Virus record (IMG/VR): IMGVR_UViG_3300007770_001284
Span: 1-64,000 of that record
Length of the DNA: 64,000 bases
Strand: one strand, 5' to 3'
This document shows positions 105 to 29,262 of this stretch, piece after piece. The number at the start of each line of letters is the position of its first letter. Position 1 is the stretch's first letter. The position numbers and the translations under genes were made by a program. Below the pieces are notes generated by a model. That model saw nothing but the letters and a program-made list of their open reading frames with translations, made no database searches and was not told the DNA's origin.

Positions 105-206
105 ATGGGCGATCAGAAGCTGTGGGACGAAAATCGACACTCTACATATGAAGAGCTAGAGCGTAGACTAGAGCACTGGGCAGGACGAATGAGGCCAGTA
201 AGATGA
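105..206 (+). CDS. 33-aa hypothetical peptide
   Basis: ATG just after the promoter; MGDQKLWDENRH...; stop overlaps the next start (ATGA). Confidence 0.4.
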   Translation: MGDQKLWDENRHSTYEELERRLEHWAGRMRPVR

Positions 207-604
207 AAATTACAAAAAGACAATTGAGAAGAATTATTAAGGAAGAGTTAGAGTACGGGGAGTTCGCACGAACACCGGAAGTTCAGGCAATGCTCCAAGC
301 TGCTGGCTTCAATGCCGATGGTAGCTTCGGTATGGATGGCTATCCTGGTCCTGCCGATTGGCGATTATACGCTCCAGAAACTATAGAAGATGCAGAGCGT
401 TGGATCGATGCTGCCATCGCTATGAATGATGCGCTGAGGCAAGCAGAGACAGCGCTGGATCGAGGCACATACCAGTACGCAAGCGATGCATGGCAGAAGA
501 TCGTCTATCCAGTCCAAATTGAATATAGCGATACTGGCGCGGCAGACACCGAAGGTCGAGAAGTCGCCGGTAACTGGCTTGAAAAAGCAGGATTTGAGTG
601 GTAA
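203..604 (+). CDS. leader-tagged protein (MKITKRQLRRIIKEE); paralog of 21792..22205
   Basis: N-terminal leader motif; shares GYPGPADW, VYPVQI and GAADTEGR with 21792..22205. Confidence 0.85.
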   Translation: MKITKRQLRRIIKEELEYGEFARTPEVQAMLQAAGFNADGSFGMDGYPGPADWRLYAPETIEDAERWIDAAIAMNDALRQAETALDRGTYQYASDAWQKIVYPVQIEYSDTGAADTEGREVAGNWLEKAGFEW

Positions 605-605
605 A

Positions 606-863
606 ATGAAAATTAGTAATCGTCGATTGCTACAGATCATCAAGGAAGAGTTAGAGACTCCTCCGTATGTGTTAGAGCGAAGTGGAGTGAGCTGGGATGA
701 ACGCTTCTTTGTTGAGATTGTCGGAGGAAGAACGATCGTATACGGTCCATTCGAGCTAGCAGAGCAGTTCTTGAGCATACAAGACGCAGAGCGAGCGCAG
801 CGCATTATTGATGATATCGACGGCTACTACACGTCTGTTCGTCCCACAAGCTTTTTCCAGTAA
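606..863 (+). CDS. leader-tagged protein (MKISNRRLLQIIKEE)
   Basis: ATG at 606 in TAAAATG context; start trimmed from track ORF 486..863. Confidence 0.8.
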   Translation: MKISNRRLLQIIKEELETPPYVLERSGVSWDERFFVEIVGGRTIVYGPFELAEQFLSIQDAERAQRIIDDIDGYYTSVRPTSFFQ

Positions 864-894
864 AAAAACTCGACAGATCTATTAGAATAACGGT

Positions 895-1623
895 ATGATT
901 GTACCGATATGCATCGGCATGCCAAGATCGGCATCTCGGATGACATGGCAACTGGCTAAACAACTGTCACCGCCAGAACCAAGCTGGTGGCAGGATAGAA
1001 TGAATATTGATGCCCCGAGTGCTCGCGTAGAGAACCCACAGGATTCTCCTTGGCCACACAGGTCTCACAACTATGTTTCTGGTAGCGATCCTGTAATCTA
1101 TACATACCGGAACCCTGTGGAGGCATACCTTTCTTTTCTTTCAAGGGTGAGCCCGGCGGTGGTATGGTATCCTAATCGAACAGCAGTAAATGAGATCCTA
1201 CAACACGTTCGAACACAGAGAAAATTGCAGCTAGACAAAGGAAGGGCAAGAAATGTCTTGTGGCTACGATACGAAGACTATTTCGGTGATGACAGAAAAC
1301 GACTTAATGACATCATGGAATTTATGGGAGTAGTAAGATCGCCCGCTGAACAAGAGAATATTCTAAAATATGTGAGCCTTTCTGCAAATCGAGCAAGATC
1401 AAAAGACATTCCGACCAATATTGATGATGCTGTGGCTTTTCACAAGTGGGAGAATACAGTGACCGGAATCCAGGGTCATCATATCAATGAAGCCACGCAA
1501 GGCCGAGTTGGTGCTTATATAGATGCTTATCCTGATGAAGTATCTCAGATTAGGTCAGCTCGACCCAACGAGCCTCTTGGCGAGTTACGACTTTTTGCCG
1601 AGTCACTTGGATATACGGTGTAG
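895..1623 (+). CDS. sulfotransferase-family protein (Sulfotransfer_1-like)
   Basis: 5'-PSB-like GMPRSASRM, 3'-PB-like YTYRNPVEAYLS, LRYED motif. Confidence 0.7.
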   Translation: MIVPICIGMPRSASRMTWQLAKQLSPPEPSWWQDRMNIDAPSARVENPQDSPWPHRSHNYVSGSDPVIYTYRNPVEAYLSFLSRVSPAVVWYPNRTAVNEILQHVRTQRKLQLDKGRARNVLWLRYEDYFGDDRKRLNDIMEFMGVVRSPAEQENILKYVSLSANRARSKDIPTNIDDAVAFHKWENTVTGIQGHHINEATQGRVGAYIDAYPDEVSQIRSARPNEPLGELRLFAESLGYTV

Positions 1624-1624
1624 C

Positions 1625-2086
1625 ATGCTTATTTTCATGTCTATTCTGGCTGGTGTCCTATATGCGAATCTAATTGAATATTGCATTCATCGTTATTTGT
1701 TCCACGGTTTTGGTCGATCGGGTTCAAGCGTCTTTGCATTCCACCTAAGAGTGCATCATTCGATAGCTAGAAGTAACGGGTTTCTTGATGACCGTGTGTC
1801 TCACAATGAGCTGATTGGACTACCGATCGTTGTCCTGCTTCATATTCCGTTCTTGTCGATACTTCCTGTGTTCTTCTACACCATCACGACATACGCATTC
1901 CTGTTCATCGTCGTCCATAACTTGATTCATCGTTATCCGCTTTTCGCACAACGATATTTTTGGTGGCACTGGAACCATCATATGCGGAACCAGAATAAGA
2001 GCTGGGGTGTTGTATTACCGATCACTGACGTCATAGTCGGAACGCTAGAAGACAACAGGATCAAGACTAAGAATCGGCGCGGCTAA
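1625..2086 (+). CDS. fatty acid hydroxylase / sterol desaturase superfamily membrane enzyme
   Basis: His boxes EYCIHRYLFH, HLRVHH, HNLIH, HWNHH; terminal WGVVLPITDVIVGT; hydrophobic segments. Confidence 0.85.
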   Translation: MLIFMSILAGVLYANLIEYCIHRYLFHGFGRSGSSVFAFHLRVHHSIARSNGFLDDRVSHNELIGLPIVVLLHIPFLSILPVFFYTITTYAFLFIVVHNLIHRYPLFAQRYFWWHWNHHMRNQNKSWGVVLPITDVIVGTLEDNRIKTKNRRG

Positions 2087-2094
2087 TAACAGAA
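2072..2094 (+). repeat. 23-bp direct repeat, copy 1 (AATCGGCGCGGCTAATAACAGAA)
   Basis: identical to 2641..2663; the pair flanks CDS 2165..2641. Confidence 0.9.
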
Positions 2095-2164
2095 AGAAAG
2101 TGTGTATTTATCGACCGCGAAGTCTAAAATAAGAAAGGTTCACAAATGAAAGGAGCAACCGATA

Positions 2165-2641
2165 ATGTCAATTTTTGAAACGCTGCGGGAAATGAATATG
2201 CCAGGAGACTCTGTTGTCAGTCTGTCTTTGAGCGAGGGCACCGATGTCTTCGTACATAACGAGTCAGAGGTCGAGACAGCGCTAACGGAGACAACTGTGG
2301 TATCAGAGTTTGCAGAGCTCGTCGCGACCAAGGGACTTGAAGTTACCACTGCATACGGAACGAACGTGCTTGACTCTCTCCGTGATGATGGTTTGCTGGA
2401 TGATTACGATCGAGAAGGGTGGTTCTCTGACTATCTTGCGGAGACGATGAACGATAACTTCTACGATCTAGATCTTATCGAGTATTCTACCGAGAAGTAC
2501 GATTACAAGCGCGGGTTCTGTACCTTGACCGCTGATGTCCGAGTCACTCTTGAGAATCTTCTTGATGTGTGTCCGCCTCTTACTGGGTGGGATGTTCAAG
2601 TGAAGACTCCAAACGGGACGCTCACTGTTACCAACGACTAA
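2165..2641 (+). CDS. acidic hypothetical protein
   Basis: 158-aa ORF with upstream AAGGAG Shine-Dalgarno. Confidence 0.8.
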   Translation: MSIFETLREMNMPGDSVVSLSLSEGTDVFVHNESEVETALTETTVVSEFAELVATKGLEVTTAYGTNVLDSLRDDGLLDDYDREGWFSDYLAETMNDNFYDLDLIEYSTEKYDYKRGFCTLTADVRVTLENLLDVCPPLTGWDVQVKTPNGTLTVTND

Positions 2642-2663
2642 ATCGGCGCGGCTAATAACAGAA
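2641..2663 (+). repeat. 23-bp direct repeat, copy 2
   Basis: identical to 2072..2094. Confidence 0.9.
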
Positions 2664-2678
2664 GTATTATAAGGTGCC

Positions 2679-3470
2679 ATGCATAAAAGAGAAATAATAC
2701 ACATACACATTCCAAAAACAGGCGGTACTTGGTTGAATGAGACCCTAGCAGCTGTTATTCCAGATTATTTTTCGTTTGGTGAGCGTGATCATGTAGCAGT
2801 TGGTGCGCAATTGGAAGGGATTAAGTCATGGAGACGTACGGCACAACAGGTTGTTGATGATATACCGTGTACGTTGGTTGTGGCGCCTACAGGACCAGCC
2901 AAATATCCGCAACGATATCTTTCGGCTACCAAAATCAGCGTGTGTCGAAATCCTTACGATCTTCTTGTCAGCTATTATTGCCATGACTGGGATTGTGCTG
3001 GTGCTCCAGCTAGTGCCGACCTTGGTGATCATCCTATGGGTTGGGACAATATCAATGCGATTCATGGGATTCGTGATTTTGATGGCTTCATAAAAAGATA
3101 TTGCGATCCGGATTTTAAGTGGCATCATGTGCACCGACAACGACACCTGTTTTACCAGATGTACGACGCATCGGGTAGCTGTGGTATCGATATTATCATG
3201 CGGAATGAACGATTGCACGAAGCAATAAGCACATTTTTAGTATCAATGGATTATTGCACTGTTGATGAGATGAAAGTACATGATAGGCGAGTAAATACAT
3301 CTCCGGGAAAGACCCGAGATTATCGTAGTTATTATACTGATGAATTGATGGATCTTGTGACAGAGAAGTGCGCAAAAGAATTGCGAGATTATGCTTACGA
3401 TTTCGACGGCCCTACCGATGCCGACGCATTTCTTGAGAACAGTCGTGAATTGTATTACGATTTTGCCTGA
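2679..3470 (+). CDS. sulfotransferase family 2 protein
   Basis: IHIHIPKTGGT, VCRNPYDLLVSYY, C-terminal YRSYYTDEL...YDF. Confidence 0.85.
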   Translation: MHKREIIHIHIPKTGGTWLNETLAAVIPDYFSFGERDHVAVGAQLEGIKSWRRTAQQVVDDIPCTLVVAPTGPAKYPQRYLSATKISVCRNPYDLLVSYYCHDWDCAGAPASADLGDHPMGWDNINAIHGIRDFDGFIKRYCDPDFKWHHVHRQRHLFYQMYDASGSCGIDIIMRNERLHEAISTFLVSMDYCTVDEMKVHDRRVNTSPGKTRDYRSYYTDELMDLVTEKCAKELRDYAYDFDGPTDADAFLENSRELYYDFA

Positions 3471-3480
3471 TGTTGATGGT

Positions 3481-3526
3481 GGCTAATAACAGAAATCCCT
3501 AAAGGAAGAGAGCAATGCAGAAGAAG
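3481..3526 (+). repeat. 46-bp direct repeat, copy 1 (GGCTAATAACAGAAATCCCTAAAGGAAGAGAGCAATGCAGAAGAAG)
   Basis: matches 4669..4714 with 1 mismatch; includes the SD and the first codons MQKK. Confidence 0.9.
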
Positions 3527-4690
3527 TCAACCCGCAAGAAAACCTCTGAAAAGATTATCCACATACACCAATCAAAGACCGGTGGCACTTGGTTGAACAC
3601 GATACTACCGAAGTATCTAAAAAACGATTATATTGCTATGCCAACCGCATACAATATAGCATCGCAGGTCTGGAAGTATGGAGACGCTGGAGCTCGTTTA
3701 AACCTCTCCCGGAAACATCTTAACGATATCTATCACAGCCCTGAATTTCATGATGTAACAAAAGTCAGTATTTGTAGGAATCCATTCGATTATCTTGTAA
3801 GTCGATATCATCAAGATGGCTTCCAGGGCACGTTTCACCCATTAGAAAAATATAGCATCCCCGGGGTACCAGCTGGAATGGATTGTGCTAACGTAGTTCA
3901 TAAAATAGGTTCTTTTGACGAGTATATCAAAAAATACTGCGACCCGGACTTTCCCTTTGTGGACCCGGATACTAGAACGTTTTTCTTTCATACGATGTTT
4001 CAAGTAGACGGATCGTGCGGTGTCGACATAATAATAAGAAATGAGATGCTTAATTCTGCTGTTGGAAAGATTGTGAGTCTACACTCTCGTTTTCGGGGTA
4101 AAGAGGAGGAGGTAAGACAGGAGATTTTACAAGAATCTATCATCAATGCTTCACCCGCGCGCGAGAAGAAAGATTACAGATCATATTACACTGATGAGTT
4201 ACGTGAATTGGTCGAAAAAAAATGTGATGCTGAACTGATGTTATTTGAATATGACTTCGATGGACCGATTAATGATTATGAGTTTATTAATCCAGACGGA
4301 TTATTCTATCATGTCATGACTTTAACAGCGATGAAAAATGTTAACCCTACAATGAAATCAGATATCCAAGAGGGTATCGTGCGCGCAATGGACATGATTT
4401 TCAACGGCCCTGACGGAATTGATCAGGAGGGATTAAAGATGCTAATGGCAGCTCATCACCATATCACACCAAATGTATTTCTTCCATACGATTCGAACAC
4501 TCTTGTATGGAATGTGGGAAATGATTGGAATGACAATCCAATCTGGAAGATGCTGCCCTCTCAAGTGAGAGTAAGCGGGGTTGGCCTTAAACGATGGGGA
4601 GTGACTGACGAAGAGATAGCACAAGCAAAGGCGAGTAACAACGGCGATGTGCTAGCCCTGCTCCGCGCGGCTAAAAACAGAAATCCCTAA
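3515..4690 (+). CDS. sulfotransferase family 2 protein with C-terminal extension; paralog of 2679..3470
   Basis: IHIHQSKTGGTWLN, ICRNPFDYLVS, KKYCDPDF, GSCGVDIIIRNE and YRSYYTDEL shared with the upstream gene. Confidence 0.85.
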   Translation: MQKKSTRKKTSEKIIHIHQSKTGGTWLNTILPKYLKNDYIAMPTAYNIASQVWKYGDAGARLNLSRKHLNDIYHSPEFHDVTKVSICRNPFDYLVSRYHQDGFQGTFHPLEKYSIPGVPAGMDCANVVHKIGSFDEYIKKYCDPDFPFVDPDTRTFFFHTMFQVDGSCGVDIIIRNEMLNSAVGKIVSLHSRFRGKEEEVRQEILQESIINASPAREKKDYRSYYTDELRELVEKKCDAELMLFEYDFDGPINDYEFINPDGLFYHVMTLTAMKNVNPTMKSDIQEGIVRAMDMIFNGPDGIDQEGLKMLMAAHHHITPNVFLPYDSNTLVWNVGNDWNDNPIWKMLPSQVRVSGVGLKRWGVTDEEIAQAKASNNGDVLALLRAAKNRNP

Positions 4691-8700: not shown

Positions 8701-9789
8701 ATGGACGTCAAAACTCTCAAAACATGTATCGCAGCCCTTCCACCCAATATCGCTGCGCTAATGCGCGGTCCCACCGGTGTCGGTAAGTCACACGTAGCCA
8801 AGGATGTCGCAGATGTCCTCGGGCTCCCATTCCTCGATGTCCGCGGAAGCACCATGGACGAGGCTAAGGTCGGCGGAATCCCGGATTTCGAGACCTCAAA
8901 GGAACGTGGGGTGTCCACCTTCTGTCCTCCCTCTTGGTTCAAGCGCGCTTGCGATGAGCCAGTTCTCCTGATGCTCGATGAGCTCAACCGCTCGATGCCG
9001 CAGGTACAGCAGGCCTTCTTTCAGATTGTCCTGGACCGAGAGCTCGGTAACGACGCTGACGGTGTACCTCTGAGGCTCCACCCCGGAACGCGTATCATCG
9101 CGGCAGTTAACTGCGGTAACGAATACGATGTCAACGACATGGATCCCGCCCTCTTGCGGCGCTTCTGGGTCTGTGACCTCGAGCCTACCGTAGCCGACTG
9201 GATTGAGTGGGCAACCGAAGCCGGTCTCGATAAGGTCCTGGTGGAGTTCATCCAGCAGAACCCCGAGCACTGGAGAGTCGACCCCGCCGATGTGGAATCT
9301 GGAACGGTCGTTCCTACTCCCGCCTCCTGGCACCGTCTCAGCGACACTCTGGTCTCGGCCGGATTGGAGCCTGCAAAGATGGCTGGATTCGAGGTTAGCT
9401 CGACTACCTACCCTCTGACCATGGGCTTCGTAGGTACGGAAGCTGCGATCTCCTTCGTTGACTTCCTCAAGAACTACGAACGTAACATTACCGCAGAGGA
9501 TGTCCTGGCCGGTAAGGTCACGGCAGAAGATGTCAAGGAGCTCCCCGCTTCTCAGAAGACTGCCCTCATCGACAAGATCAGCACTCACGCTGCTGAGAAC
9601 AAGTGGAAGAAGGCAGAGGTCAAGAGGATCGCGGCGTTCGCAACCGAACTCGGTGGTGAGTTCCTGATTGCAACCTTCACGGCAGTGCAGAGAGCCAACA
9701 ACATGGCGAACCTGCTCCCCCTCAACAAGTTGATTGGAATGGAAGTAGTCTCCCTGGTCAACGATGCACGGGCAGTGTCGAAGGACTAA
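8701..9789 (+). CDS. MoxR-like / AAA_5 family AAA+ ATPase
   Basis: Walker A GPTGVGKS, Walker B LMLDELNR, sensor IAAVN, MDPALLRRF. Confidence 0.9.
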   Translation: MDVKTLKTCIAALPPNIAALMRGPTGVGKSHVAKDVADVLGLPFLDVRGSTMDEAKVGGIPDFETSKERGVSTFCPPSWFKRACDEPVLLMLDELNRSMPQVQQAFFQIVLDRELGNDADGVPLRLHPGTRIIAAVNCGNEYDVNDMDPALLRRFWVCDLEPTVADWIEWATEAGLDKVLVEFIQQNPEHWRVDPADVESGTVVPTPASWHRLSDTLVSAGLEPAKMAGFEVSSTTYPLTMGFVGTEAAISFVDFLKNYERNITAEDVLAGKVTAEDVKELPASQKTALIDKISTHAAENKWKKAEVKRIAAFATELGGEFLIATFTAVQRANNMANLLPLNKLIGMEVVSLVNDARAVSKD

Positions 9790-9806
9790 AGGGGAATGAC
9801 GTCCCC

Positions 9807-9844
9807 GGTGTCGGGGGGTGGGTGACCCCCCGGCGCCATCTTTT
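9807..9844 (+). terminator. GC-rich hairpin terminator
   Basis: GGTGTCGGGGGG/CCCCCCGGCGCC 12-bp stem followed by ATCTTTT. Confidence 0.65.
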
Positions 9845-9860
9845 ATCACCCAGGAAAGAT

Positions 9861-10055
9861 ATGACGAATCAACCCACAGATACTGAAGTCATACAAGCTG
9901 TCCAACGATGGCTTATAGAAGCACGAGACTTCAGGAATGATGGGTATGTCCAGCACGGGTATAAAGAGAAATTGCTAGCGGTGCATGCCACCACAACAGC
10001 AGCTCTACAAACGCTGGGATTGATCACTAATATTTCCTCAGAAAAGAGTAATTAA
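9861..10055 (+). CDS. hypothetical protein
   Basis: ATG at 9861 with AGGAAAG SD; trimmed from track ORF 9822. Confidence 0.7.
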   Translation: MTNQPTDTEVIQAVQRWLIEARDFRNDGYVQHGYKEKLLAVHATTTAALQTLGLITNISSEKSN

Positions 10056-10067
10056 ATCTAACACTTC

Positions 10068-10096: not shown

Positions 10097-10118
10097 ATAA
10101 TTGAAGGTAGGAATGGAT

Positions 10119-17457: not shown

Positions 17458-17460
17458 GAA

Positions 17461-19774: not shown

Positions 19775-19952
19775 TTTAGTCAACATAAGGGATCCCATCG
19801 ACGACACAATAAAATGTGCTGTGCTGCTTTCCGTACCAACAAAAAATCCCTATGTCGGATACACTGCAGTTGTGCTACTCAACGGTAGAACATTTGAAAT
19901 ACTCTGGGAGACGCTCTTTGAGCTCAACAAAAAAGTGTGGGATGATACTTAA
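19761..19952 (+). CDS. SH3-like miniprotein (MNVGDLV)
   Basis: GDLV...AVLL...AVVLLNG...LFEL. Confidence 0.7.
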   Translation: MNVGDLVNIRDPIDDTIKCAVLLSVPTKNPYVGYTAVVLLNGRTFEILWETLFELNKKVWDDT

Positions 19953-19961
19953 TACATTGGA

Positions 19962-20258
19962 ATGAATAAGGTTGGCGGGCTCCTTTTTTTATTAACCTTG
20001 TGCGCATGCGCGCACACAGGCCCGAGTAGACGCACCGCTGAAAGGTGCACCCCACTGCTCGAAGAAATTCTTATCATCCAAGATTTTAGAGAAGAATTAA
20101 ATCAAGAGATCGCAGTCGCTATCCATAGTCGTAAAGCGGGGGAGCTCACAAAAGAGCAGTACCACGAAATATTTGAGCTGTGGTTAAGCCGTGAAAACGG
20201 ATTACGTTCTTACGTGACAGAATTATATGACAGAGCTTACAAGACAGGATGCTTATAG
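19962..20258 (+). CDS. putative lipoprotein
   Basis: MNKVGGLLFLLTLCA-C signal. Confidence 0.7.
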   Translation: MNKVGGLLFLLTLCACAHTGPSRRTAERCTPLLEEILIIQDFREELNQEIAVAIHSRKAGELTKEQYHEIFELWLSRENGLRSYVTELYDRAYKTGCL

Positions 20259-20259
20259 T

Positions 20260-20288
20260 GTGTAAACGTAACAGTCTATTATTACAAT
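20260..20288 (+). promoter_or_regulatory. sigma70-type promoter
   Basis: GTGTAA-N17-TACAAT, a variant of the early promoter motif. Confidence 0.65.
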
Positions 20289-20308
20289 ATGTTAAGTGAG
20301 GGGTTAGT

Positions 20309-20803
20309 TTGAGTAACATAGTAGAACGAGCTAAACAATTTGCATTGGAACACCACAAGGGTCAAGTTCATGGTCCGAGACCTTTTTGGCACCACCTTAG
20401 AGATGTTGTGAATGTTTTGAAAGAATTCGGCGTGAAGGACGCAGATCTTCTTGCTGCTGCATGGCTTCACGACGTAGTTGAAGATACATCAGTTACTATA
20501 ACTAAGGTTAAGACAGAATTTGGTGATCGGGTCGGTGTACTAGTTGATGCATTGACCGACGGTCCGGGAAAGACGAGAGCAGAAAAGAAAGCGAAGCCGT
20601 ACCGCATGCTCCCTACAATTCCTGGTGCAACAACAGTGAAGGTAGCTGATCGAATCGCAAACGTCCGTTTTTCCCATAAGCAGCACGCGCAACGTTATCT
20701 GACATGCTACAAGACAGAGCATCCAGGTTTTTTGAAAGCCCTGCGAGTGCAGGATGAGCTAAAAGAAATGTGGCATCATTTAGACTCATTGCTGACCGAT
20801 TAA
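20309..20803 (+). CDS. HD-domain (p)ppGpp hydrolase-like protein (small alarmone hydrolase / MESH1-like)
   Basis: A..FA...H.GQ, HLRDV, AAWLHDVVEDT, EFGDRV..LVDALTD, VKVADRIANVR. Confidence 0.85.
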   Translation: MSNIVERAKQFALEHHKGQVHGPRPFWHHLRDVVNVLKEFGVKDADLLAAAWLHDVVEDTSVTITKVKTEFGDRVGVLVDALTDGPGKTRAEKKAKPYRMLPTIPGATTVKVADRIANVRFSHKQHAQRYLTCYKTEHPGFLKALRVQDELKEMWHHLDSLLTD

Positions 20804-20806
20804 TAT

Positions 20807-20829
20807 AAAGGGCAGTTAGCTCTTTTTTT
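20807..20829 (+). terminator. Rho-independent terminator
   Basis: AAAGGGC-AGTTA-GCTCTTT followed by a T run. Confidence 0.6.
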
Positions 20830-21018
20830 AGGTTTACAGCAATAATATTAATATGCTGGGGTGACTATTTAGTTGCAAAGATAGAGCTTTGTGAGAGAGT
20901 CGACATTTTGAAGGCTGTAATTGAGGACAGTTCCAGCCAGAAGCAATATTTAGTAACCAGATCACCTGCTTCAGGTTGTGGTGTGTGTACACGCTTAAGT
21001 CCTCGAGGGAATGCTAGA

Positions 21019-21354
21019 ATGAAAATAACAAAAAGACACCTTAGAAAGATTATTAAAGAAGCCATTAATGAGGCCCGTGAACCGATGACTCCGGATTATG
21101 TTTTTAATGCATTGACGAAGGGAAAAAGCGCTCGCACAGGGACGCCGTTCATCGATACAGCTATGGACGGACTCGCGACCGGTGATGGTCGCATAGTCGC
21201 CAATGCTATTATGGACGCGCTATGGGTTGATGATCCTCCCGTGGGTGCAGATAAAGAATTAGAAGGTCTCGTGCTTGACCTACCTCCCGACGCTGACGAA
21301 TACGATCTAGCTGCCGTCGCAGCAGAGTGGGGAACCCGGCACTTCAGAGGCTAA
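21019..21354 (+). CDS. leader-tagged protein (MKITKRHLRKIIKEAINE)
   Basis: leader motif; start trimmed from track ORF 20908. Confidence 0.8.
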   Translation: MKITKRHLRKIIKEAINEAREPMTPDYVFNALTKGKSARTGTPFIDTAMDGLATGDGRIVANAIMDALWVDDPPVGADKELEGLVLDLPPDADEYDLAAVAAEWGTRHFRG

Positions 21355-21379
21355 AGACTTTATTTAGGAGAATAATGTT

Positions 21380-21790
21380 ATGTTAGAACTATTACAAGCG
21401 TGCTGGAATTTAGTAGCAGGACTTGTTGCGTCTCTTTGGGGACTAGTGGTTACGGTATCGGTTTTAGTTGGTGATGTTTTGCTACATCTTCATACCGACG
21501 CTCCTCGTCTTGAGGGGTTGGTGGTTGGTGTCACGCTAGCGTGGTTGCTTCTTCGCCGAGATCGTCATCCGGTATTACGCGTCTTAAGTGCACCTTTGAA
21601 ATTGGTGCTCGATGTTTTAGACCTCGCCTGGGATCAGGTTGTAGAAGTAGCAAGTGATGGTTGGAATATCATTAACGGTTCCATTCGAGGAGCGGTAGGT
21701 TGGTGTTGGGGTAAGATTTCCAGCACTGGCTCATGGGTAATGAATAGATTACGTGCGCTCAAAGCACGATTAGAAAAAGCTGGAGAATAA
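21380..21790 (+). CDS. membrane protein
   Basis: SD AGGAG; hydrophobic amphipathic helices. Confidence 0.75.
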   Translation: MLELLQACWNLVAGLVASLWGLVVTVSVLVGDVLLHLHTDAPRLEGLVVGVTLAWLLLRRDRHPVLRVLSAPLKLVLDVLDLAWDQVVEVASDGWNIINGSIRGAVGWCWGKISSTGSWVMNRLRALKARLEKAGE

Positions 21791-21791
21791 A

Positions 21792-22205
21792 ATGAAGATG
21801 TCCAAAAGACAATTAAGAAAAATTATTAGAGAAGTAGCTGCAGAGTCTGAACACGGTGACTTTTCAAAGAATTCCATAATCCGAGCCGCCCGGCCGGAGA
21901 TCAGCGGTTTCAGTCCTGACGGCAGCTCTGGCAGTTCTGGTTATCCTGGCCCTGCCGATTGGAAGTTGTATCCACCAGAAACCATGGACGAAGCTGAAGG
22001 CTGGATCGCCGCTGCTATAGAGATGAACGATGGGTTGATGAAGGCTGAAGAAGCCCTTGAGAAAGGAGAGTTCTACGAGGCGCGAGATGCTTTTGTTAAA
22101 TATGTCTATCCTGTGCAGATAAAATTTGAAGAGCACGGTGCCGCAGATACCGAAGGTAGAAGGGTAGCTGCTTCGTGGCTGGAAGATAAAGGATTTAGAT
22201 GGTAA
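21792..22205 (+). CDS. leader-tagged protein (MKMSKRQLRKIIRE); paralog of 203..604
   Basis: leader plus the shared GYPGPADW/VYPVQI/GAADTEGR domain. Confidence 0.85.
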   Translation: MKMSKRQLRKIIREVAAESEHGDFSKNSIIRAARPEISGFSPDGSSGSSGYPGPADWKLYPPETMDEAEGWIAAAIEMNDGLMKAEEALEKGEFYEARDAFVKYVYPVQIKFEEHGAADTEGRRVAASWLEDKGFRW

Positions 22206-22206: not shown

Positions 22207-22665
22207 ATGAAAATTACAAAGAGACAGCTCAAAAGAATTATTAGAGAAGAAAAACGAAAAATGATGGATGAGTGTCCTGGTGATATGGACATGGGTCACT
22301 CCGCTGACGTCGTTGAAATTAGTCCAGAACCCGTTGAGTCTGATTCTGGGTTGATGGCAGAGACAACCTCTGCTGACGGTGAGCTAGTTGTTGAAATGGA
22401 ACTAGCAAGTAGGGCCCTCGAACAAGTTGTTGAGTCAGTCCAGAATGCTGCTCATCTATGCCCGGATTGTACCGGTCCAGTAGCTGCTCAAGCTCAGATA
22501 ATGGAAGCAATGGTCGCACAGGCCGAAGCCCTCCAGGAGATGCTGGAGGCACAAGCTGGTCTTGTTGCAGAATCTGTTGAACTTGACTTTACAGGCGATG
22601 TCGGTGAGCTTCCTGGTGAAGATGCCTTCGCTATAGGTTACACAGCCGGCTCTCAAGGGTTATAA
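22207..22665 (+). CDS. leader-tagged acidic protein (MKITKRQLKRIIREE)
   Basis: leader motif; acidic helical body. Confidence 0.85.
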   Translation: MKITKRQLKRIIREEKRKMMDECPGDMDMGHSADVVEISPEPVESDSGLMAETTSADGELVVEMELASRALEQVVESVQNAAHLCPDCTGPVAAQAQIMEAMVAQAEALQEMLEAQAGLVAESVELDFTGDVGELPGEDAFAIGYTAGSQGL

Positions 22666-22670: not shown

Positions 22671-23204
22671 ATGAAGGTTACACGACAGCGCCTCAGACAG
22701 ATCATCAAGGAAGAGCTTGGTTCAATCGTAACGGGTAGGGAAAAAGGGATGCAAGTTTCAGAGCACCCACCTGCAGGGACAACAGGTCTGGAGATTGGAG
22801 ATGTCGTGTATCTTACACCTGAGGCATACGGTGATGCTGACCTACATAAGTTTGGTAGCGATTGGCCACCGATAACAGTCACAGAACTTGGCAACGTCGA
22901 AGATCTCCACGGTACAACTGTACCTGCGAAAACAGACCCACCGTCTGACTGGGATTGGGTCGCTGGTGCAACCGGGCCTGGATTTGTTGGAGAGTATGAA
23001 GCTGCTCCAGGTCTTGGGAACCACGAAGATCTTGTTTTTCCGATGCATGCTATCGATTGGGAATACACAAAACGAGGACCCAAAGAACCGTGGAAGATGC
23101 CTCCGGGACCAGGAATGTACGTCGGCGGATCCGAGCAATGGGATAACGTTACAGAGTCATATTCATTGTTAGACGCGCTAGGGTTAAGGAAGACACCAAA
23201 ATGA
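22671..23204 (+). CDS. leader-tagged protein (MKVTRQRLRQIIKEE)
   Basis: leader motif. Confidence 0.85.
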   Translation: MKVTRQRLRQIIKEELGSIVTGREKGMQVSEHPPAGTTGLEIGDVVYLTPEAYGDADLHKFGSDWPPITVTELGNVEDLHGTTVPAKTDPPSDWDWVAGATGPGFVGEYEAAPGLGNHEDLVFPMHAIDWEYTKRGPKEPWKMPPGPGMYVGGSEQWDNVTESYSLLDALGLRKTPK

Positions 23205-26032
23205 AAACGCAATTTTACGGTGCGGCGCTTACGCGGCGTCTGCAGGAAGAGCGGGAAACAATATTATTTGAATTAGCTAAGGAGAAGAAAAGCTTACGTC
23301 TTTTGTTCGAAGCTTCAGGTAATCCCCAGTTCGATGCGTTAGCTCTTCAATTAGAGCTGATCCAATTAAATGAGTTCATTCTACCTGAAAGTCGCCTTCT
23401 GGTTTCCTGTGGTCTGGATCTAAAGAGTAGAATTGTTGAGGGGACCGTCAGGGAAATTCAAGAATATTATGAGTTAACTGACGAAGAAGCCGAGGTACTA
23501 CGCGAGGGATTTTGGGATGCTGTCCAGTCTGGAATTGGAAACTTTGCGGGTGGCGTTGATAAAGTTTTAAAGAAAGTTAAACTAAAGAAAGAGCCCGCGG
23601 GGTGGGACCAGGCACAAAAGATATTTCAAAAAGTTGCAGAAAAAGAAGGAAACCAAGTAGTCAAAGACCTTGTGAAAGCAATTGACGAGGAAGCCAGAGA
23701 GCTTGAATCAGGTCTCGGTTCTGGAAAGAACGACCTTACTTTTCCGTACAACAAGCATTCAAATGTGTTCCAGTCTGGTGTTAATACAATCGCTTCCGTT
23801 TACGACACCGTTGTCGACGCGACAGACAAAGATGCAGGTGCTGAGGGGTATCTCCCTGTTGAAGTAGCCAACGAGATAATCGAGCAATTGCGGATTATTG
23901 TCAACAAATATATCGCTGATGTTGAACGAGAAAAAGGTGGGATGTACGTTTCTTTCGGAGGAACAGGCGAGGCTATAGCAGACGAAAAAGCATTGCCAGC
24001 TCGAGAAGCCTACACCCGTTACGAAAGATTACTTCAAGAAGCAGAAGAGGGTGAAGCGCAGTTAGACCCAGAAGAGGAATACGAAAAGATTATGCGGGGT
24101 CAAGATTCCCCCACATTTAAGCGTATGTCTTCTATGAAGGCGCCTGTGATTATTGCTGGACTTGGTGTTTCGCTTGCCGCGCTGGGGTGGATGTCACAAA
24201 TGCCCTGGTTCCAGGATCTTATTTTACGGATTCTAGGTCTAGAGAAACCTACAGGCCCAAAGATTGTAGATGAAATCAAGGCCGCACCTCCCTTTCAGTT
24301 TTCGGGTGACTTAAAAAGCGGAGAAGGACTGACACAGTTTTTCGAAAGAGCCGTTGAAGGTGCTCCCGATCTCGGTCCGAATGCATCATCAGATAATTTT
24401 CTTAAAGTTGCTGAAAAGCTCGGCGGGGGTGATCTTGACAAGGGCCTAAAAAATATAGCATCTTTTACAGAGGGTGCAGGTGATCCTGGTGCTGCATACA
24501 CCGCGCTAAAGGGTTTAGCAGATAGTGGCAAGTCAATGCCCATCGGAGAATTCTTCAAACAGGCAACAGAAATGTCTGGCACAGGTGGTACAATTTTTGC
24601 AGTCCACCCTGGTGAGAAGATAGCACAGGGTGTTGCAAAGAAAGTTGTTAAAGAGGTTGTTAAGGGTGGTGTAAAGTCTGCCGGCGGCGGTGGCGCCGCG
24701 GCGGCAGTAGCCACAATGACAGCTGCAGGACCTATTTTAGCCGGTATTGGTCTTGGTGCTGTTGTCGCCGGTGCATCGTTAGCTGCGATCCGACAGCGGG
24801 CCAAGAAAAAATCTCGAATGGGAGTATTGAACGATTTGTTAGCTACGCTGAATTTGGTCGAACCAAAACCGGTGGACCTACCTCCCCAGGAAGATGTAAC
24901 GGTCCAGGTTGTGCTTACCAACCCCGAAGAGGGTGAGGTAGTCGAAGGTCGCAGATACAACAAGTATAGCCTCGTAAATGCCCTGTATGACCCCATGGAC
25001 GAAGCGACGGTGGTGGCCATGGCTGGTCTTGAGGGTGACCCTGACTTAGAGAAGACAGGCGGAAAATTGAGTTTTATGTTACCAAGCGTTGCTTTAACTG
25101 ATCCCGCGCCGAAAGTAGCGGACATCGACGAAATTCCAGATGTCATTAAAGGAATTAATGCTAAGTTACCTGATTTAGATCTGGACGATCCGACGGTAAA
25201 TGTAAAAGTTGTTGACAACAGAAAAGCAAAAAAGACGAAACCAGTTAAGCCTCCCGTTCCAGTTGTTCCTGACAATATTGCAAAGGGAGAGCATGCAGTC
25301 TGCGTATTCACTGTAAAGGATGGTGCAGAGGTATGGAGAATCTTAAAGAAGGTAACGTATAGGAAATATGCTTCTGATGCGAAGAAATCCGGTGATAAGG
25401 ATGCACCAAAGTTTGCTGATCGCTACAAGCGATATGACGATATTCTAGCCAGCCTAAGAGCCGACGGCGTGTTCGTTGATACTCCCGAGCTAGAGAAAGA
25501 GTTAACGCAAATTTCCAGTGGACCTCAGGGAGATCAGTACAAAGCAACCTACACCAGGACCCGAAAGAACAAGAAGACAGGTGAAACCACTCGCAAAAAG
25601 TCAGTGACAGGTGGGTACACAACAGCTGGAGAAGTTGCCTCAATCGGTGATATCAGGAAGAACATTAAGGGTGCAGGAAACAAGCGCCCCCGCGGGGTAG
25701 ACAAGTACACAGTGATTTACCTTGTAGGAAATGATGTACTAAGTGCTGTTGAAAAAGCTGGAATGAGCAAGGACGAGGCAAAGAATATCATCATGGCAGC
25801 CCTGTCAAAATGGTCAAACGACGAAAAGCGTCCTAAGATGAAAGACCTCGGTGTAACAGACGACGCAGTAGCTGGCGTTTTACGGTCGGCTAGCCTTGCA
25901 GAAACCTATCAAATATCTACCGGCCGACAGAGAGTTATGGTGGTAGGTGTGAAACAATTCTCAAAGATCCTAAGAGAAAACCATGCCGCAAATGAATTGG
26001 GAAGGTGGCAAAAGTTAGCAGGGATCAGATGA
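23201..26032 (+). CDS. 943-aa candidate internal head / ejection protein
   Basis: embedded in the leader-gene cluster; two hydrophobic Gly/Ala segments; repeated L/I-x-E sites; ends RWQKLAGIR. The ORF is secure; the function is inferred. Confidence 0.75.
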   Translation: MKTQFYGAALTRRLQEERETILFELAKEKKSLRLLFEASGNPQFDALALQLELIQLNEFILPESRLLVSCGLDLKSRIVEGTVREIQEYYELTDEEAEVLREGFWDAVQSGIGNFAGGVDKVLKKVKLKKEPAGWDQAQKIFQKVAEKEGNQVVKDLVKAIDEEARELESGLGSGKNDLTFPYNKHSNVFQSGVNTIASVYDTVVDATDKDAGAEGYLPVEVANEIIEQLRIIVNKYIADVEREKGGMYVSFGGTGEAIADEKALPAREAYTRYERLLQEAEEGEAQLDPEEEYEKIMRGQDSPTFKRMSSMKAPVIIAGLGVSLAALGWMSQMPWFQDLILRILGLEKPTGPKIVDEIKAAPPFQFSGDLKSGEGLTQFFERAVEGAPDLGPNASSDNFLKVAEKLGGGDLDKGLKNIASFTEGAGDPGAAYTALKGLADSGKSMPIGEFFKQATEMSGTGGTIFAVHPGEKIAQGVAKKVVKEVVKGGVKSAGGGGAAAAVATMTAAGPILAGIGLGAVVAGASLAAIRQRAKKKSRMGVLNDLLATLNLVEPKPVDLPPQEDVTVQVVLTNPEEGEVVEGRRYNKYSLVNALYDPMDEATVVAMAGLEGDPDLEKTGGKLSFMLPSVALTDPAPKVADIDEIPDVIKGINAKLPDLDLDDPTVNVKVVDNRKAKKTKPVKPPVPVVPDNIAKGEHAVCVFTVKDGAEVWRILKKVTYRKYASDAKKSGDKDAPKFADRYKRYDDILASLRADGVFVDTPELEKELTQISSGPQGDQYKATYTRTRKNKKTGETTRKKSVTGGYTTAGEVASIGDIRKNIKGAGNKRPRGVDKYTVIYLVGNDVLSAVEKAGMSKDEAKNIIMAALSKWSNDEKRPKMKDLGVTDDAVAGVLRSASLAETYQISTGRQRVMVVGVKQFSKILRENHAANELGRWQKLAGIR

Positions 26033-26361
26033 AAATCACAAGGCGACAGCTAAGAAGAATAATCAAAGAGCAGATGTCAAACCCACAGGTTGGGTTTAAG
26101 CCGCTGGAGTCTTTCCAGATCCCATATCGCAATTATGGGTATGAGGGTCGTAGGATCATTGATCGAGATCGAGCGTGGCTTGAATTTGTTCCAAAGGGTT
26201 CACCACCAAAGACTCAAGAAGACATGTTTAGAACAGTAACACTTTTAGATAGCGATGATCCAGAAATAGGGCTCGCTATGGCAACTGTGCACGCTCCGAA
26301 GTCTGCCGGTCCGGTGGAAAGCTATGACGTTTACAGCGTATACGCTACCACTACAGGATAA
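26029..26361 (+). CDS. leader-tagged protein (MKITRRQLRRIIKEQ)
   Basis: leader motif; ATGA-coupled. Confidence 0.85.
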   Translation: MKITRRQLRRIIKEQMSNPQVGFKPLESFQIPYRNYGYEGRRIIDRDRAWLEFVPKGSPPKTQEDMFRTVTLLDSDDPEIGLAMATVHAPKSAGPVESYDVYSVYATTTG

Positions 26362-26364: not shown

Positions 26365-26664
26365 ATGAAAATTACTCGCCGCCAGCTTAGAAGAATTATT
26401 AGGGAAGCGATCCACGATCCTGGTGATGATGCGCTTATCGATACCCTTATATTTGGGTGGGAACAGTCGGGCATCGCCGATCCAGATCTCCCCCCCCAGC
26501 GGAAAGGAGACGCAGCTCTGGCATGGGTTTCTAAGAATGAGCCAGATATTGCACGTCAAATTAACGCACTTTCTACTCATAAGCTAAAAGCCTTGTACAG
26601 CGCGGCATTTGACGAAGATGCAGACCGCGGTCATAAAACAAGCGCGATGGACTGGAATAGATAA
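26365..26664 (+). CDS. leader-tagged protein (MKITRRQLRRIIREA)
   Basis: leader motif. Confidence 0.85.
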   Translation: MKITRRQLRRIIREAIHDPGDDALIDTLIFGWEQSGIADPDLPPQRKGDAALAWVSKNEPDIARQINALSTHKLKALYSAAFDEDADRGHKTSAMDWNR

Positions 26665-27041
26665 TGAAAATTACTCGCCGCCAGCTTAGACAGATAATTC
26701 GAGAGTCTATCTTGGAAGAGAGGAAAGGCGCATCAGCATCTGATATCGCTCGTTTCAAACCACAGCTTATTGAGTGGACAGAGATTCTAATCGATGAATT
26801 GGCTGAGGCGGTACCTACTATGAAAGAGATGAGTGAGAAGGCTCGGACAAATATGGTGCGAAGCCTTGCTGACAAAGTTTCTGTTGAGCTAACTGGCTTG
26901 ACAAGCGGCATGAGTTATTCTTCGCAGAAGCGAATTGAAAAAAGAGCTGAGGATAAAGCTCATCAGAAATGGGACAGAGACCGAAGAGCTCGAGCGTCAA
27001 ATGTACGTTATTATGGTGAGTGGGAAGGATTTTCAGGGTAA
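26664..27041 (+). CDS. leader-tagged protein (MKITRRQLRQIIRES)
   Basis: leader motif; the 30 bp around the start are identical to those of the previous gene. Confidence 0.85.
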   Translation: MKITRRQLRQIIRESILEERKGASASDIARFKPQLIEWTEILIDELAEAVPTMKEMSEKARTNMVRSLADKVSVELTGLTSGMSYSSQKRIEKRAEDKAHQKWDRDRRARASNVRYYGEWEGFSG

Positions 27042-27042: not shown

Positions 27043-27321
27043 ATGAAGATTACAAAAAATCAGATTAGAAGAATTCTCAAAGAAACCATGTACAATTTGT
27101 GGGCAAATTACAGTCCTGAATCGATCAAGGCAGCCGAGGCGGCCTTAAATATTTTAGGCCATGACCCGAACGTTCGCGGTGCAGAAGTTGAAAATGAAAT
27201 TCACAATTATCTAGAGAATACCCTTGGCATGAGCTCATCAAGCGATGAAATTTTTGCTATCGGTGATGAAGCAATGGAAGCAGCAGAAGTGATGCTTGGT
27301 CTTCCGAAGGATACGCTCTAA
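27043..27321 (+). CDS. leader-tagged protein (MKITKNQIRRILKET)
   Basis: leader motif; ATG 27043 in TAAAATG. Confidence 0.82.
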   Translation: MKITKNQIRRILKETMYNLWANYSPESIKAAEAALNILGHDPNVRGAEVENEIHNYLENTLGMSSSSDEIFAIGDEAMEAAEVMLGLPKDTL

Positions 27322-27617
27322 TGAAAATTACCACTAGACAGCTTAGAAGTCTCATCCGCGAAGTTCTTATTAAAGAACAAGTTGTCGGCTATACAGCTCC
27401 AGAAGAAAAAGGGGATGATGACGATGGTGGTGGATACTTAGATGTGGGTGATATGGGAGTTGACATCTCTCAATCGTCTGAGGAAGGAACGCAAGCATCA
27501 GGACAAGCAGTGAAGAGTCTAACGCAGCAGCGACAACAAGATCTAGATACTGGTGATGTCGAGGCAGCCGAATCAGATGAACAACAACTGTCAGCAGCTC
27601 AAAAGATGAGAGGATAA
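27321..27617 (+). CDS. leader-tagged acidic protein (MKITTRQLRSLIRE)
   Basis: leader motif. Confidence 0.85.
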   Translation: MKITTRQLRSLIREVLIKEQVVGYTAPEEKGDDDDGGGYLDVGDMGVDISQSSEEGTQASGQAVKSLTQQRQQDLDTGDVEAAESDEQQLSAAQKMRG

Positions 27618-27618
27618 A

Positions 27619-28242
27619 ATGAAAGTTACAAAAAGACAACTATTAAAGATTATACGCGAAGAGGCCGAAGCGTCAGACGAAGCCGGCTCGGTAACTGTCA
27701 CCACTGAAACTGATGAAGTTGATGAAAATGACGAACAAATGAAGCACGATGATGATGGGGATGTCACGGAATCTTTTCGTAGAGAGCTGCGACGTATCGT
27801 AAGAAAAGAATATCGACGAGGAATCCGTGAGGGCCGGACCGGGCACGCTGTGGGGACTGGCTTTGCAGGATGGAGACCGTCGAGTCGTCCCAATTTTGCA
27901 ACATCATATTCCAGCGAAGCAAAATACGCGGATTCGAGATATCAGACTCATCCCAAGTATAAAACAGGTGAGCTGGATACGCTGGCTGAGGTACAGGGGT
28001 GGACTTCCGAATATACGTTGGAGAGTAACGAGAGTGGTGCTTTGAGAACAAAGGCTCGTATCGATCACGGCTCTGTTGTTGTAGAGTTCGGACATTCAAT
28101 GACTTTAAGACTAGACGCTGACGATACTTTTGCGCTATCTAAATTACTACAGGACGCCGCGAGCAGACTCGCCATCGACGAACGAGAATACATCACATTA
28201 CGTGATCCGCAAGCAGGCGGTCTCACAGAGGAAGACTACTAG
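27619..28242 (+). CDS. leader-tagged protein (MKVTKRQLLKIIREE) with an internal second leader-like segment
   Basis: leader; internal FRRELRRIVRKEY. Confidence 0.85.
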   Translation: MKVTKRQLLKIIREEAEASDEAGSVTVTTETDEVDENDEQMKHDDDGDVTESFRRELRRIVRKEYRRGIREGRTGHAVGTGFAGWRPSSRPNFATSYSSEAKYADSRYQTHPKYKTGELDTLAEVQGWTSEYTLESNESGALRTKARIDHGSVVVEFGHSMTLRLDADDTFALSKLLQDAASRLAIDEREYITLRDPQAGGLTEEDY

Positions 28243-28245
28243 AGC

Positions 28246-28386
28246 ATGGCGAACCCACTTAAAAAAATCCGTGACTGGATGGAATGGAGGGGTCTTACAC
28301 CCAAAGATGCCCTTGGTGCCTTAGTTCCAATGGCTTTCCTGGTTGGAATAACGCTATTGTTTTTATGGGGAGCGTGGCAGGCATGA
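28246..28386 (+). CDS. 46-aa membrane peptide
   Basis: read directly: MANPLKKIRDWMEW...LVGITLLFLWGAWQA. Confidence 0.6.
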   Translation: MANPLKKIRDWMEWRGLTPKDALGALVPMAFLVGITLLFLWGAWQA

Positions 28387-28580
28387 ACCATACGGCACCA
28401 TTGGTGGGAATTCTTTTGATGGCTGGTTGCCCAAAGAAAATCGAAGAAGAAAAACCGGTGCATATTTGGCCTACTGACCCGATTAGACTAGAGCTGCCAG
28501 AAGAAGATTATGATCTAGAAGATTTACCAGAAGCTGGAGAAGATACCGGCGCTAAGGAAGAAAGCAATGAAATTCACTAA
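28383..28580 (+). CDS. small putative lipoprotein
   Basis: MNHTAPLVGILLMAG-C lipobox; ATGA-coupled. Confidence 0.6.
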   Translation: MNHTAPLVGILLMAGCPKKIEEEKPVHIWPTDPIRLELPEEDYDLEDLPEAGEDTGAKEESNEIH

Positions 28581-29262
28581 GCGACAAATTTTAAGAATTA
28601 TACATGAAGAAGTTAAAGGTCTCGAAGATCTTGAAGGCGTTGATAGCATTGAGGGTATCGAATCACCAGTTGACGTCGAAGCAGTTGAAGATGCCTGGGC
28701 TGGTGGCGAGAACATAGTCGAGCCCATGGACCATTCAGAAGCGGGTGGTGGTGAAAAAGAACCAACCACAGGAGTTGAGGTCCAAGAAATAGTCGAACGT
28801 GTTGCTCGTAAACTACGAATCAAGCGGCTTATTAAAGAAATTGATTGGGTTGATCCTATGGCATTCTTACCAGACGCAGAAGCAACAGAACAAGCTTGGG
28901 CTGCAGGAGATAGACTTTCACTCATGATCGATCAGCCGGGTCTAGTTGGCGAAGAAGAACCAGCAGAGGAGAGCGAAGAAGAAATTTCTGAACGGATTCT
29001 TCGAAAGGTACGACTTAAGAAATTAGTGCGGGAAGCAGAAGAAGAAGCTGCTCCAGCTAATCCTGAAGCGAAGACAACAGCAGGGAAAAAAGCTGGTAAA
29101 GCCCTCGATAAAAGTGGCGTTCAACCTTTACTAATCGCGATTGATGAAGCAGGATCAGAGGCAGCAGTGGAAGAAATATTGACTCAACTAATCGGTCAGC
29201 TTTCAGATGATGGGAAAAAGTATCTTAAGAAAGCAATGTCAGATATTATTCGAGCACAATAA
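28567..29262 (+). CDS. leader-tagged acidic protein (MKFTKRQILRIIHEE) with internal repeats of a leader-like segment
   Basis: leader; internal RKLRIKRLIKE and RKVRLKKLVRE; repeated E.AWA.G. Confidence 0.85.
   Translation: MKFTKRQILRIIHEEVKGLEDLEGVDSIEGIESPVDVEAVEDAWAGGENIVEPMDHSEAGGGEKEPTTGVEVQEIVERVARKLRIKRLIKEIDWVDPMAFLPDAEATEQAWAAGDRLSLMIDQPGLVGEEEPAEESEEEISERILRKVRLKKLVREAEEEAAPANPEAKTTAGKKAGKALDKSGVQPLLIAIDEAGSEAAVEEILTQLIGQLSDDGKKYLKKAMSDIIRAQ

Follow-up and report, generated by a model that had tools for sequence, protein, structure and literature searches.

A short basic leader shared by small, otherwise unrelated proteins that an uncultured marine jumbo myophage of the T4 type encodes, and its proposed role in capsid targeting

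The DNA analyzed here, referred to below as the window, comprised 64,000 nucleotides (positions 1 to 64,000 of IMG/VR virus record IMGVR_UViG_3300007770_001284) and formed the first 64 kb of the marine contig Ga0105015_1000011, which is 254,743 bp long. Thirteen genes in the window opened with the same 14-residue N-terminal leader, with the consensus M-K-I-T-K-R-Q-L-R-R-I-I-K/R-E. All 13 started with ATG on the plus strand, encoded open reading frames (ORFs) of 85-231 amino acids (aa), and conformed to the pattern MK[IVMF][TS]xxxLxxI[IL][KRH]E. A common leader on these genes had been claimed in an earlier sequence-only reading, and the claim was borne out by two scoring schemes. With a position matrix derived from the 13 leaders, their own scores ranged from 41.0 to 53.7 bits, compared with 11.1 bits for the next-best 16-mer in six frames across the 64 kb. 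An independent hidden Markov model (HMM), a check suggested in that reading, was built from 295 distinct leaders, all from contigs other than that of the window. It clearly separated the 13 genes (18.5-38.3 bits) from the rest of the window, where the next match reached 7.1 bits.

Beyond the leader, the proteins had little in common. When their bodies (residue 17 to the end) were compared by BLASTP, the only related pair consisted of the genes starting at 203 and 21792 (60% identity over 83 aa, E = 7e-34), and no relationship was detected among all other pairs (E > 0.8). The description of the bodies as unrelated apart from this pair was therefore confirmed, and the internal leader-like segments noted earlier in genes 27619 and 28567 were also present, though weak (3-7 bits). 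The coordinates of all features are collected in Table 1.

Table 1. Leader genes of the window, other ORFs of the main array, and the prohead protease gene of the linked head module.
Feature	Coordinates	Strand	Length	Remarks
Leader gene	203..604	+	133 aa	'YPGPADW...AADTEGRE' body family; paralogue of 21792
Leader gene	606..863	+	85 aa	MKISNRRLLQIIKEE; HMM 20.2 bits
Leader gene	21019..21354	+	111 aa	Opens main array; terminator-like hairpin upstream at 20807-20825
Leader gene	21792..22205	+	137 aa	Paralogue of 203
Leader gene	22207..22665	+	152 aa	Body acidic
Leader gene	22671..23204	+	177 aa	
Leader gene	26029..26361	+	110 aa	
Leader gene	26365..26664	+	99 aa	Top HMM score of window, 38.3 bits
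Leader gene	26664..27041	+	125 aa	Sole near-neutral body, isoelectric point (pI) 7.9
Leader gene	27043..27321	+	92 aa	
Leader gene	27321..27617	+	98 aa	
Leader gene	27619..28242	+	207 aa	Weak internal leader-like segment 27766-27813 (TESFRRELRRIVRKEY)
Leader gene	28567..29262	+	231 aa	Weak internal leader-like segments 28798-28845 (RVARKLRIKRLIKEID), 28993-29040 (RILRKVRLKKLVREAE)
Leaderless hydrophobic protein, system membership uncertain	21380..21790	+	136 aa	
ORF inside main array	23201..26032	+	943 aa	A/G/K-rich; two hydrophobic segments; starts MKTQFYGAALTRRLQEE
Peptidase_S77 prohead protease	L399:12835-13455		206 aa	

Homologues of the leaderless protein at 21380, with 43-55% identity, were found by tblastn next to leader genes in five other loci (L001, L002, L014, L017, and L024). 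For the 943-aa ORF, no relative was found in Pfam, PHROGs, ESM Atlas, or the fetched loci.

The leader was found far beyond the window. When the protein at 203 was used as a query against 5.8 billion proteins, it retrieved its own family (47 clusters) together with dozens of unrelated marine-metagenome proteins that aligned by the leader alone, with 100% identity over 11% of the query. A degenerate DNA pattern of the leader recovered 73 stretches from IMG/VR, distributed over about 45 contigs, many of which measured 170-293 kb. In total, 396 leader ORFs (356 after removal of redundancy; median length 102 aa) were identified in these stretches; as many as 10 leader genes followed one another directly, and an 11-kb locus held up to 15. 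The bodies of 351 such proteins fell into 183 BLAST clusters, 122 of which were singletons. Relatives of the window phage encode hundreds of unrelated, mostly acidic small leader proteins, and the leader is a modular tag.

A leader profile of 16 positions was additionally searched against 1.84 billion representative proteins, yielding 934 matches at E <= 0.001. Since a single leader copy falls below this cut-off, the matches are mainly multi-leader proteins, and the true number of carriers is far higher. The 138 newly recovered top matches examined (P0241-P0378) carried two or three leaders per ORF, about 120 aa apart, and the methionine was kept in 65% of the internal copies. By their sequence, such ORFs resemble fused neighboring leader genes and may possibly be polyproteins; several leaders within one ORF would be tolerable if each leader were a cut site.

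The leader had previously been called a phage-wide sorting tag. The term proved too narrow, as both the IMG/VR and the protein searches indicated a lineage-wide tag of uncultured marine phages. Among 50,697 phage records, neither a cultured carrier of leader arrays (megablast and tblastn) nor a close relative of the window was found. The leader motif string was likewise not found among 8.4 million full texts, and the literature obtained on capsid-targeting sequences (CTS) and T4-like phages consisted of work on T4 and giant phages only.

The architecture of the leader proteins was most evident in the 203 family. An alignment of 36 members showed the conserved leader, a variable linker of 0-35 residues after E14, and a conserved body with 45-86% identity and about 20 invariant residues; a second leader was located upstream in three members. 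In the AlphaFold2 (AF2) model of 203, the helical body had a predicted local distance difference test (pLDDT) value above 90, and residues 1-20 had values of 56-60, with a detached helix at residues 5-14. No match to this model was found in PDB or BFVD. The leader is basic (pI 11-12, net charge about +5) and amphipathic, its hydrophobic moment of 0.69 lying in the top 5% of shuffles. The bodies had a median pI of 4.6, with 88% of them below pI 6 compared with 45% of control ORFs.

Domain searches gave no indication of body function. For the window leader proteins, nothing usable was obtained from Pfam or PHROGs, and no Pfam domain was detected on the 10 proteins scanned (to E = 1). Of the leader proteins of at least 150 aa (n = 73), three had a weak Pfam hit, and no enzyme was found. 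According to the sequence-only reading, frequent occurrence of the motif on clearly non-virion enzymes would have spoken against a packaging role; no such enzyme was encountered among the leader proteins scanned with Pfam. An apparent leader-bearing Nudix family turned out to be an artefact of single-linkage clustering. The leader also did not resemble a Sec/Tat signal peptide, as it had no hydrophobic run, a mean hydrophobicity of -0.66, and 5-6 basic residues. In MuF-type head-packaged polymorphic toxins, variable toxin parts at the C-terminus are joined to an N-terminal MuF domain that is large and conserved. No MuF domain was detected on the 10 window proteins (to E = 1) or on the 73 longer leader proteins (to E = 0.001), although one weak Mu-like_Pro match (6.7e-4) was noted among the latter.

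Judged by its gene content, the genome is that of an uncultured marine T4-type jumbo myophage with a gp21-type protease, an acidic scaffold, and a Gp23 capsid. The gene content of the window alone (a helicase, a DUF444/SpoVR/PrkA triad, PhoH, sulfotransferases, glycosyltransferases, and two giant ORFs) was indecisive as to virus type. The window was linked to a head module by walking through identical overlapping assemblies. Locus L080 matched window positions 52650-64000 with 99.956% identity, L398 matched L080 with 100% identity over 11.3 kb, and L398 and L399 lie on one 123,373-bp contig. Locus L399 encodes Terminase_6N, Portal_T4, Peptidase_S77 (206 aa), the small proteins p143 and p88, a 582-aa acidic scaffold, Gp23, and T4 gp13. 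The scaffold is poly-acidic, with peptides including EGDDDEEE and EEDVEEEE. A giant-virus origin, considered because of one GVMAG-named contig and the sulfotransferase and glycosyltransferase genes, was rejected because genes for a tail sheath, a baseplate hub, and a T4-type head identify a tailed phage.

The same association was observed elsewhere in the lineage, with leader arrays and a T4-type head module occurring together on ten large contigs. The loci around leader arrays contained a tail sheath, a baseplate hub, and a tape-measure-like gene, and a Gp23-type major capsid protein (PF07068, E = 6e-75; phrog_138) was found beside the sheath. On a 293-kb contig (L164), leader arrays and an 80%-identical homologue of 203 accompanied a head module in the order portal, 283-aa protein, 203-aa protease, 151-aa protein, p143, p88, 174-aa protein, 194-aa protein, 562-aa acidic scaffold, two capsid genes, neck genes, and two sheath genes. 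The 203-aa protease matched T4 gp21 (PDB 5JBL) with E = 1.4e-13 and had at least 8,000 relatives, with PF03420 in 120 of the 120 best. The protease of L399 keeps the catalytic His and Ser and has an N-terminal L-T-E9 where T4 has LIE-9. The lineage also has a tandem pair of sheath paralogues, each about 1,050 aa long, and some of its genomes carry two tandem 630-aa Gp23-type capsid copies, which may be a gp23/gp24-like pair; the loci concerned are L164:8009-11887 and 15620-21885, L109, and L082.

The arrays themselves occupied different places. In L184 (a 318-kb contig), they were located directly 3' of the capsid gene, whereas in L082, L018, L004, and L011 they were flanked by the genes for the tail tube and the baseplate hub. 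Of 80 related sheath loci, only 7 contained arrays, which indicates that the arrays are insertions at variable spots.

In T4, gp21 cleaves after the Glu of L/I-X-E, and the first 10 residues of internal protein III (IPIII) constitute the CTS, with positions 4 and 7 serving targeting and positions 8 and 10 serving processing (PMC9026906). The N-terminus of both IPII and IPIII, read from NC_000866, is MKTYQEFIAE/A (here and below, the slash marks the cleavage or predicted cleavage site). The propeptide of T4 gp23 is longer, with 65 residues (PMC5694885).

The end of the marine leader had a corresponding form. The tripeptide [IL]-x-E ended at residue 14 in 338 of 356 leaders. In the 295 distinct leaders, E14 reached a frequency of 0.99 and I12 of 0.95, although both positions were fixed by the search pattern. 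Among the positions left free by the pattern, residue 13 was K or R in 89% and residue 15 was E or A in 80% of leaders. Conservation collapsed after position 15 and was absent from position 16 on, and of the 345 leaders with such a site, 302 had E, A, or S as the P1' residue. In a subclade of the 203 family without E14, the leader continued as ...IRKQLIKE/GYGDF, so that L-I-K-E recurred 4-5 residues later, one helical turn on.

The capsid protein provided a second comparison. In a MAFFT alignment, the T4 gp23 site FLTE/AEIGG and the gp24 site LLRE/S were in register with QVL[RK]E/A[NS]S of marine capsid proteins, and the capsid protein of the window phage had QILRE/QNT at the aligned maturation site. 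The predicted maturation site therefore has the form of the leader end, that is, L or I, a basic residue, and Glu.

Two small genes of the head module showed a further resemblance. The conserved genes p143 and p88 lie between protease and scaffold, the place of T4 gp67/gp68, with N-termini MAKISKSMLKGIVKECL and KKLTPSLLRRLVLQERKK. Across the lineage, p143 starts as MAK[IV][ST]KxxLKG[IL]VKECL, or as MKITKxQLKxIVKECL in some phages, and scored up to 20 bits on the leader HMM; p88, starting as K[KL]LTPxLL[RK][RK][IL]VxEE, scored up to 13 bits. T4 gp67 contains TIDLIKEEK and has an acidic tail. Like gp67 and gp68, which are small, acidic, cut by gp21, and encoded in the portal-scaffold interval, p143 and p88 thus occupy this interval and have leader-like N-termini. 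The 13 window genes differ from gp67/gp68 in lying outside the head module, at a distance of about 70-130 kb from it, in having unrelated bodies, and in not being conserved in relatives.

Taken together, the leader is probably a capsid-targeting propeptide that is removed by the prohead protease, by analogy with the T4 CTS and without homology to it. This agrees in part with the sequence-only reading, which had proposed T4-style targeting with cleavage after Glu. The T4-type phage, the gp21-family protease, the I-x-E end, and the L-[RK]-E/A site of the capsid all spoke for it, as did the leader-like N-termini of head-core proteins and the arrays in head and tail blocks. The analysis gave no support to the effector role and the injection that were also proposed there. 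In addition, the leader is not homologous to the T4 CTS, and the bodies, being acidic, differ from the basic T4 internal proteins.

During prohead assembly, the leader helix would dock the protein on the acidic scaffold or core. Docking of an electrostatic and amphipathic nature is proposed because the leader is basic and amphipathic, the cargo acidic, and the scaffold poly-acidic. The prohead protease would then cut after Glu14 (L/I-x-E) and free the body from the core within the head. Subsequently, the bodies might either remain inside the head and pass into the host together with the DNA or exit the head.

When compared with the T4 CTS proteins (IPI, IPII, IPIII, and Alt), the marine system also relies on a short N-terminal sequence common to unrelated small proteins, beginning with MK and ending with I-x-E. 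It is likewise accompanied by a gp21-family protease, a scaffold, and a Gp23 capsid, and its genes are located in variable regions (PMC9026906). The T4 CTS MKTYQEFIAE (also MKTFKEF...) and the leader MKITKRQLRRIIKE are nevertheless not homologous, as they share MK and I-x-E alone. The leader has 14 residues and is highly basic, whereas the T4 CTS has 10 and is near-neutral. The numbers of genes also differ, with 13 genes in 64 kb, up to 15 in one 11-kb locus, and at least 183 body families here, compared with 3-4 genes in T4. Multi-leader proteins are frequent here, unlike in T4. New relative to the T4 CTS are therefore the longer basic tag, the acidic cargo, and the far larger and more varied gene set.

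Other phages package proteins differently. The giant phages phiKZ, 201phi2-1, and SPN3US load many proteins into the head, and the propeptides of their inner-body or ejection proteins are removed after Glu by a gp21-related protease (PMC5694885; PMC9026906). These propeptides are mostly longer than 100 residues, with an S/A/G-x-E motif (PMC5694885). They share no sequence, whereas the leader is one short, near-identical tag ending in I-x-E within a true T4-type lineage with Gp23.

Phage P1 is reported to package the non-structural anti-restriction proteins DarA, DarB, and Hdf in its myophage head, where they are carried to act in the next infection, with hierarchical incorporation via DarA and Hdf. 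To our knowledge, the P1 Dar proteins have no shared short leader, and no homology to them was seen here.

The closest cultured relative found, itself distant, was Flavobacterium phage vB_FspM_immuto (NC_055915). The head module of this phage is of the T4 type and includes a gene annotated as a prohead core protease. Its capsid protein was 46.7% identical to that of the window phage over 59% of the length; together with that of Microcystis phage Mel-JY01, it was among the closest cultured capsid proteins (about 47% identity). Protein gp080 of immuto starts with MKKSQLRQIIKEAL and scored 21 bits on the leader HMM, and the head-module protein gp072 starts with MKKSQIVKAVQEVLEE (L404:2689-3447, 12856-13077). 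A scan of the genome outside positions 100,001-110,499 revealed one or two leader-like genes and no arrays. Two further gene pairs of immuto have other shared N-termini (MENFDLKKFLVEN... and MKKQILSEQFRRMQ...). No virion proteomics of immuto was found in the literature.

Transcription signals were also considered. The ATA-N-TTA[TA] 8-mers ATATTTAT, ATACTTAT, and ATAGTTAT were enriched 25-70 nt upstream of structural genes; the regions concerned precede the genes for sheath, scaffold, and portal in loci L081-L397, one instance being L164:15575-15590. They preceded 52-55% of sheath and scaffold genes, compared with about 5% of shuffles. The motif is a candidate late promoter of the lineage, unlike the T4 late promoter TATAAATA. 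Sigma-70-like sites occurred at chance level.

Several observations weighed against the proposal of a cleaved capsid-targeting propeptide. The motif L/I-x-E is short and common in helical proteins, and within the bodies [IL]xE was not depleted but enriched relative to shuffles, as it was in the controls. The p143 and p88 of the window phage itself scored about 0 on the leader HMM, so that their likeness is at pattern level only. The window array does not adjoin structural genes, as the head module lies, by offset, at about 134-147 kb along the contig. The T4 late promoter was not enriched, and the ATA-N-TTA[TA] motif showed only weak enrichment before leader genes (23% versus 12% of controls, p = 0.046). 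Finally, the acidic bodies contrast with the basic T4 internal proteins, whose bodies have pI values of 7.9-9.7, and would be odd for storage with DNA.

The acidity of the bodies may also be read in another way. The leader could target the proteins and be cleaved while the bodies served as disposable core or scaffold fillers, like T4 gp67, gp68, and gp22, and were expelled at maturation. Acidic bodies would indeed resemble scaffold and core proteins, leader-like genes of the head module hold the gp67/gp68 positions, and a jumbo genome has a very large head to build. We nevertheless regard this explanation as unlikely. The division of the bodies into so many unrelated clusters, with content varying strongly between relatives, is unlike structural parts; at least one body, that of the 203 family, is well-folded and retains its invariant residues; and the low share of sheath loci with arrays indicates that the arrays are dispensable.

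A comparably low probability is given to the possibility that the amphipathic helix acts in the infected cell, for example by binding a membrane, nucleic acid, or a common host or phage partner or by oligomerisation, with neither a capsid role nor cleavage. Its strong amphipathicity and its charge would suit such a function, the window array lies among non-structural genes, and multi-leader proteins could gain avidity. This would leave unexplained, however, why conservation stops at the Glu of I-x-E and why the motif returns one turn later in leaders without E14. Nor would it account for the resemblance to the maturation site of the capsid protein, for leader-like N-termini on head-core proteins, or for the arrays in head and tail blocks.

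A role of the leader at the nucleic-acid level was evaluated from codon usage and flanking identity. Five different Leu codons were used at Leu8 of the 13 genes, two of which have Ile instead, and five Arg codons occurred at the Arg positions. Nucleotide identity between genes was 67% within the leader, 31% in the 30 nt upstream, and 28% in codons 16-30, both flanking values being at random level. The conservation is thus that of a peptide and represents neither a DNA repeat nor recent gene conversion. The same residue was encoded by the same codon in 50% of cases compared with 35% expected, a modest excess involving A/T-rich codons. This excess and the variable, insertion-like positions of the arrays would be compatible with a DNA or RNA element at the 5' ends, such as a translation-initiation or repressor site or a body-shuffling recombination cassette. 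Such an element is very improbable given the codon variety and the random flanks, and because one peptide is kept in hundreds of genes from many genomes and also within ORFs.

Least probable of all is processing of the leader by the nearby trypsin-like serine protease (32233-33030, minus strand) instead of the prohead protease, since, although its homologues occur near leader arrays in 7 loci and the leader is rich in Lys and Arg, its N-terminal signal peptide indicates that it is probably exported while the leader proteins have no export signal, and the I-x-E end would not be explained. The protease gene itself has an intact His/Asp/Ser triad and is oriented opposite to the surrounding genes.

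Several other genes of the window deserve mention. A phage-encoded DUF444/SpoVR/PrkA triad, a bacterial kinase module linked to stress or sporulation, was located at 35757-40179; proteins related to its PrkA at about 31% identity are encoded by huge uncultured phages, by Thermus phages, and by Ralstonia phage RsoM2USA. A gene pair at 8701-11537, in a stretch of 52-55% guanine-cytosine (GC) content, encodes a MoxR-type AAA ATPase (AAA_5) and, after it, a DUF2201 protein, to which metallopeptidase and VWA domains were putatively assigned; this pair is kept in several related contigs. A PhoH-like ATPase with a fused N-terminal PIN domain was located at 43886-45217. The region 45608-58606, with a GC content of about 50% compared with 39-46% nearby, encodes a LamG-domain protein followed by two giant ORFs (2148 and 1811 aa), of which the latter has a BclA_C-like C-terminus; the giant ORFs are probably fibre or surface proteins. 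Large glycan-modification islands were present at 895-4690 and at 58787-64000, the latter extending on the contig as far as about 84 kb (L080, L398). Their genes include several sulfotransferases, a fatty-acid hydroxylase, GT2/GT7C/GT11 glycosyltransferases, UDP-glucose dehydrogenase, an aminotransferase, epimerases, and a nucleotidyl transferase.

Beyond the proposed targeting and cleavage, the leader may, tentatively, be a universal loading signal for a large and rapidly evolving repertoire, by which dozens of different acidic proteins per virion, including polyproteins cleaved in the head, would be packaged and injected against host defences. If this were true, the phage head would function in the manner of a secretion system whose substrates share a signal peptide, and abundant ocean phages would package far more kinds of protein than any T4 relative studied. 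A tag of 14 residues would then be enough to predict the packaged proteome from sequence, and hundreds of 'hypothetical' marine viral genes would be assigned to a virion-delivered class of probable counter-defence factors. Metagenomes and viral metaproteomes could then be used to test the old question of what phages inject besides DNA. For the loading of foreign proteins into T4-type heads, a second capsid-targeting tag, unrelated to the first, would also become available. The combination of a basic tag, acidic cargo, and a poly-acidic scaffold bears on the mechanism of targeting and suggests electrostatic docking.

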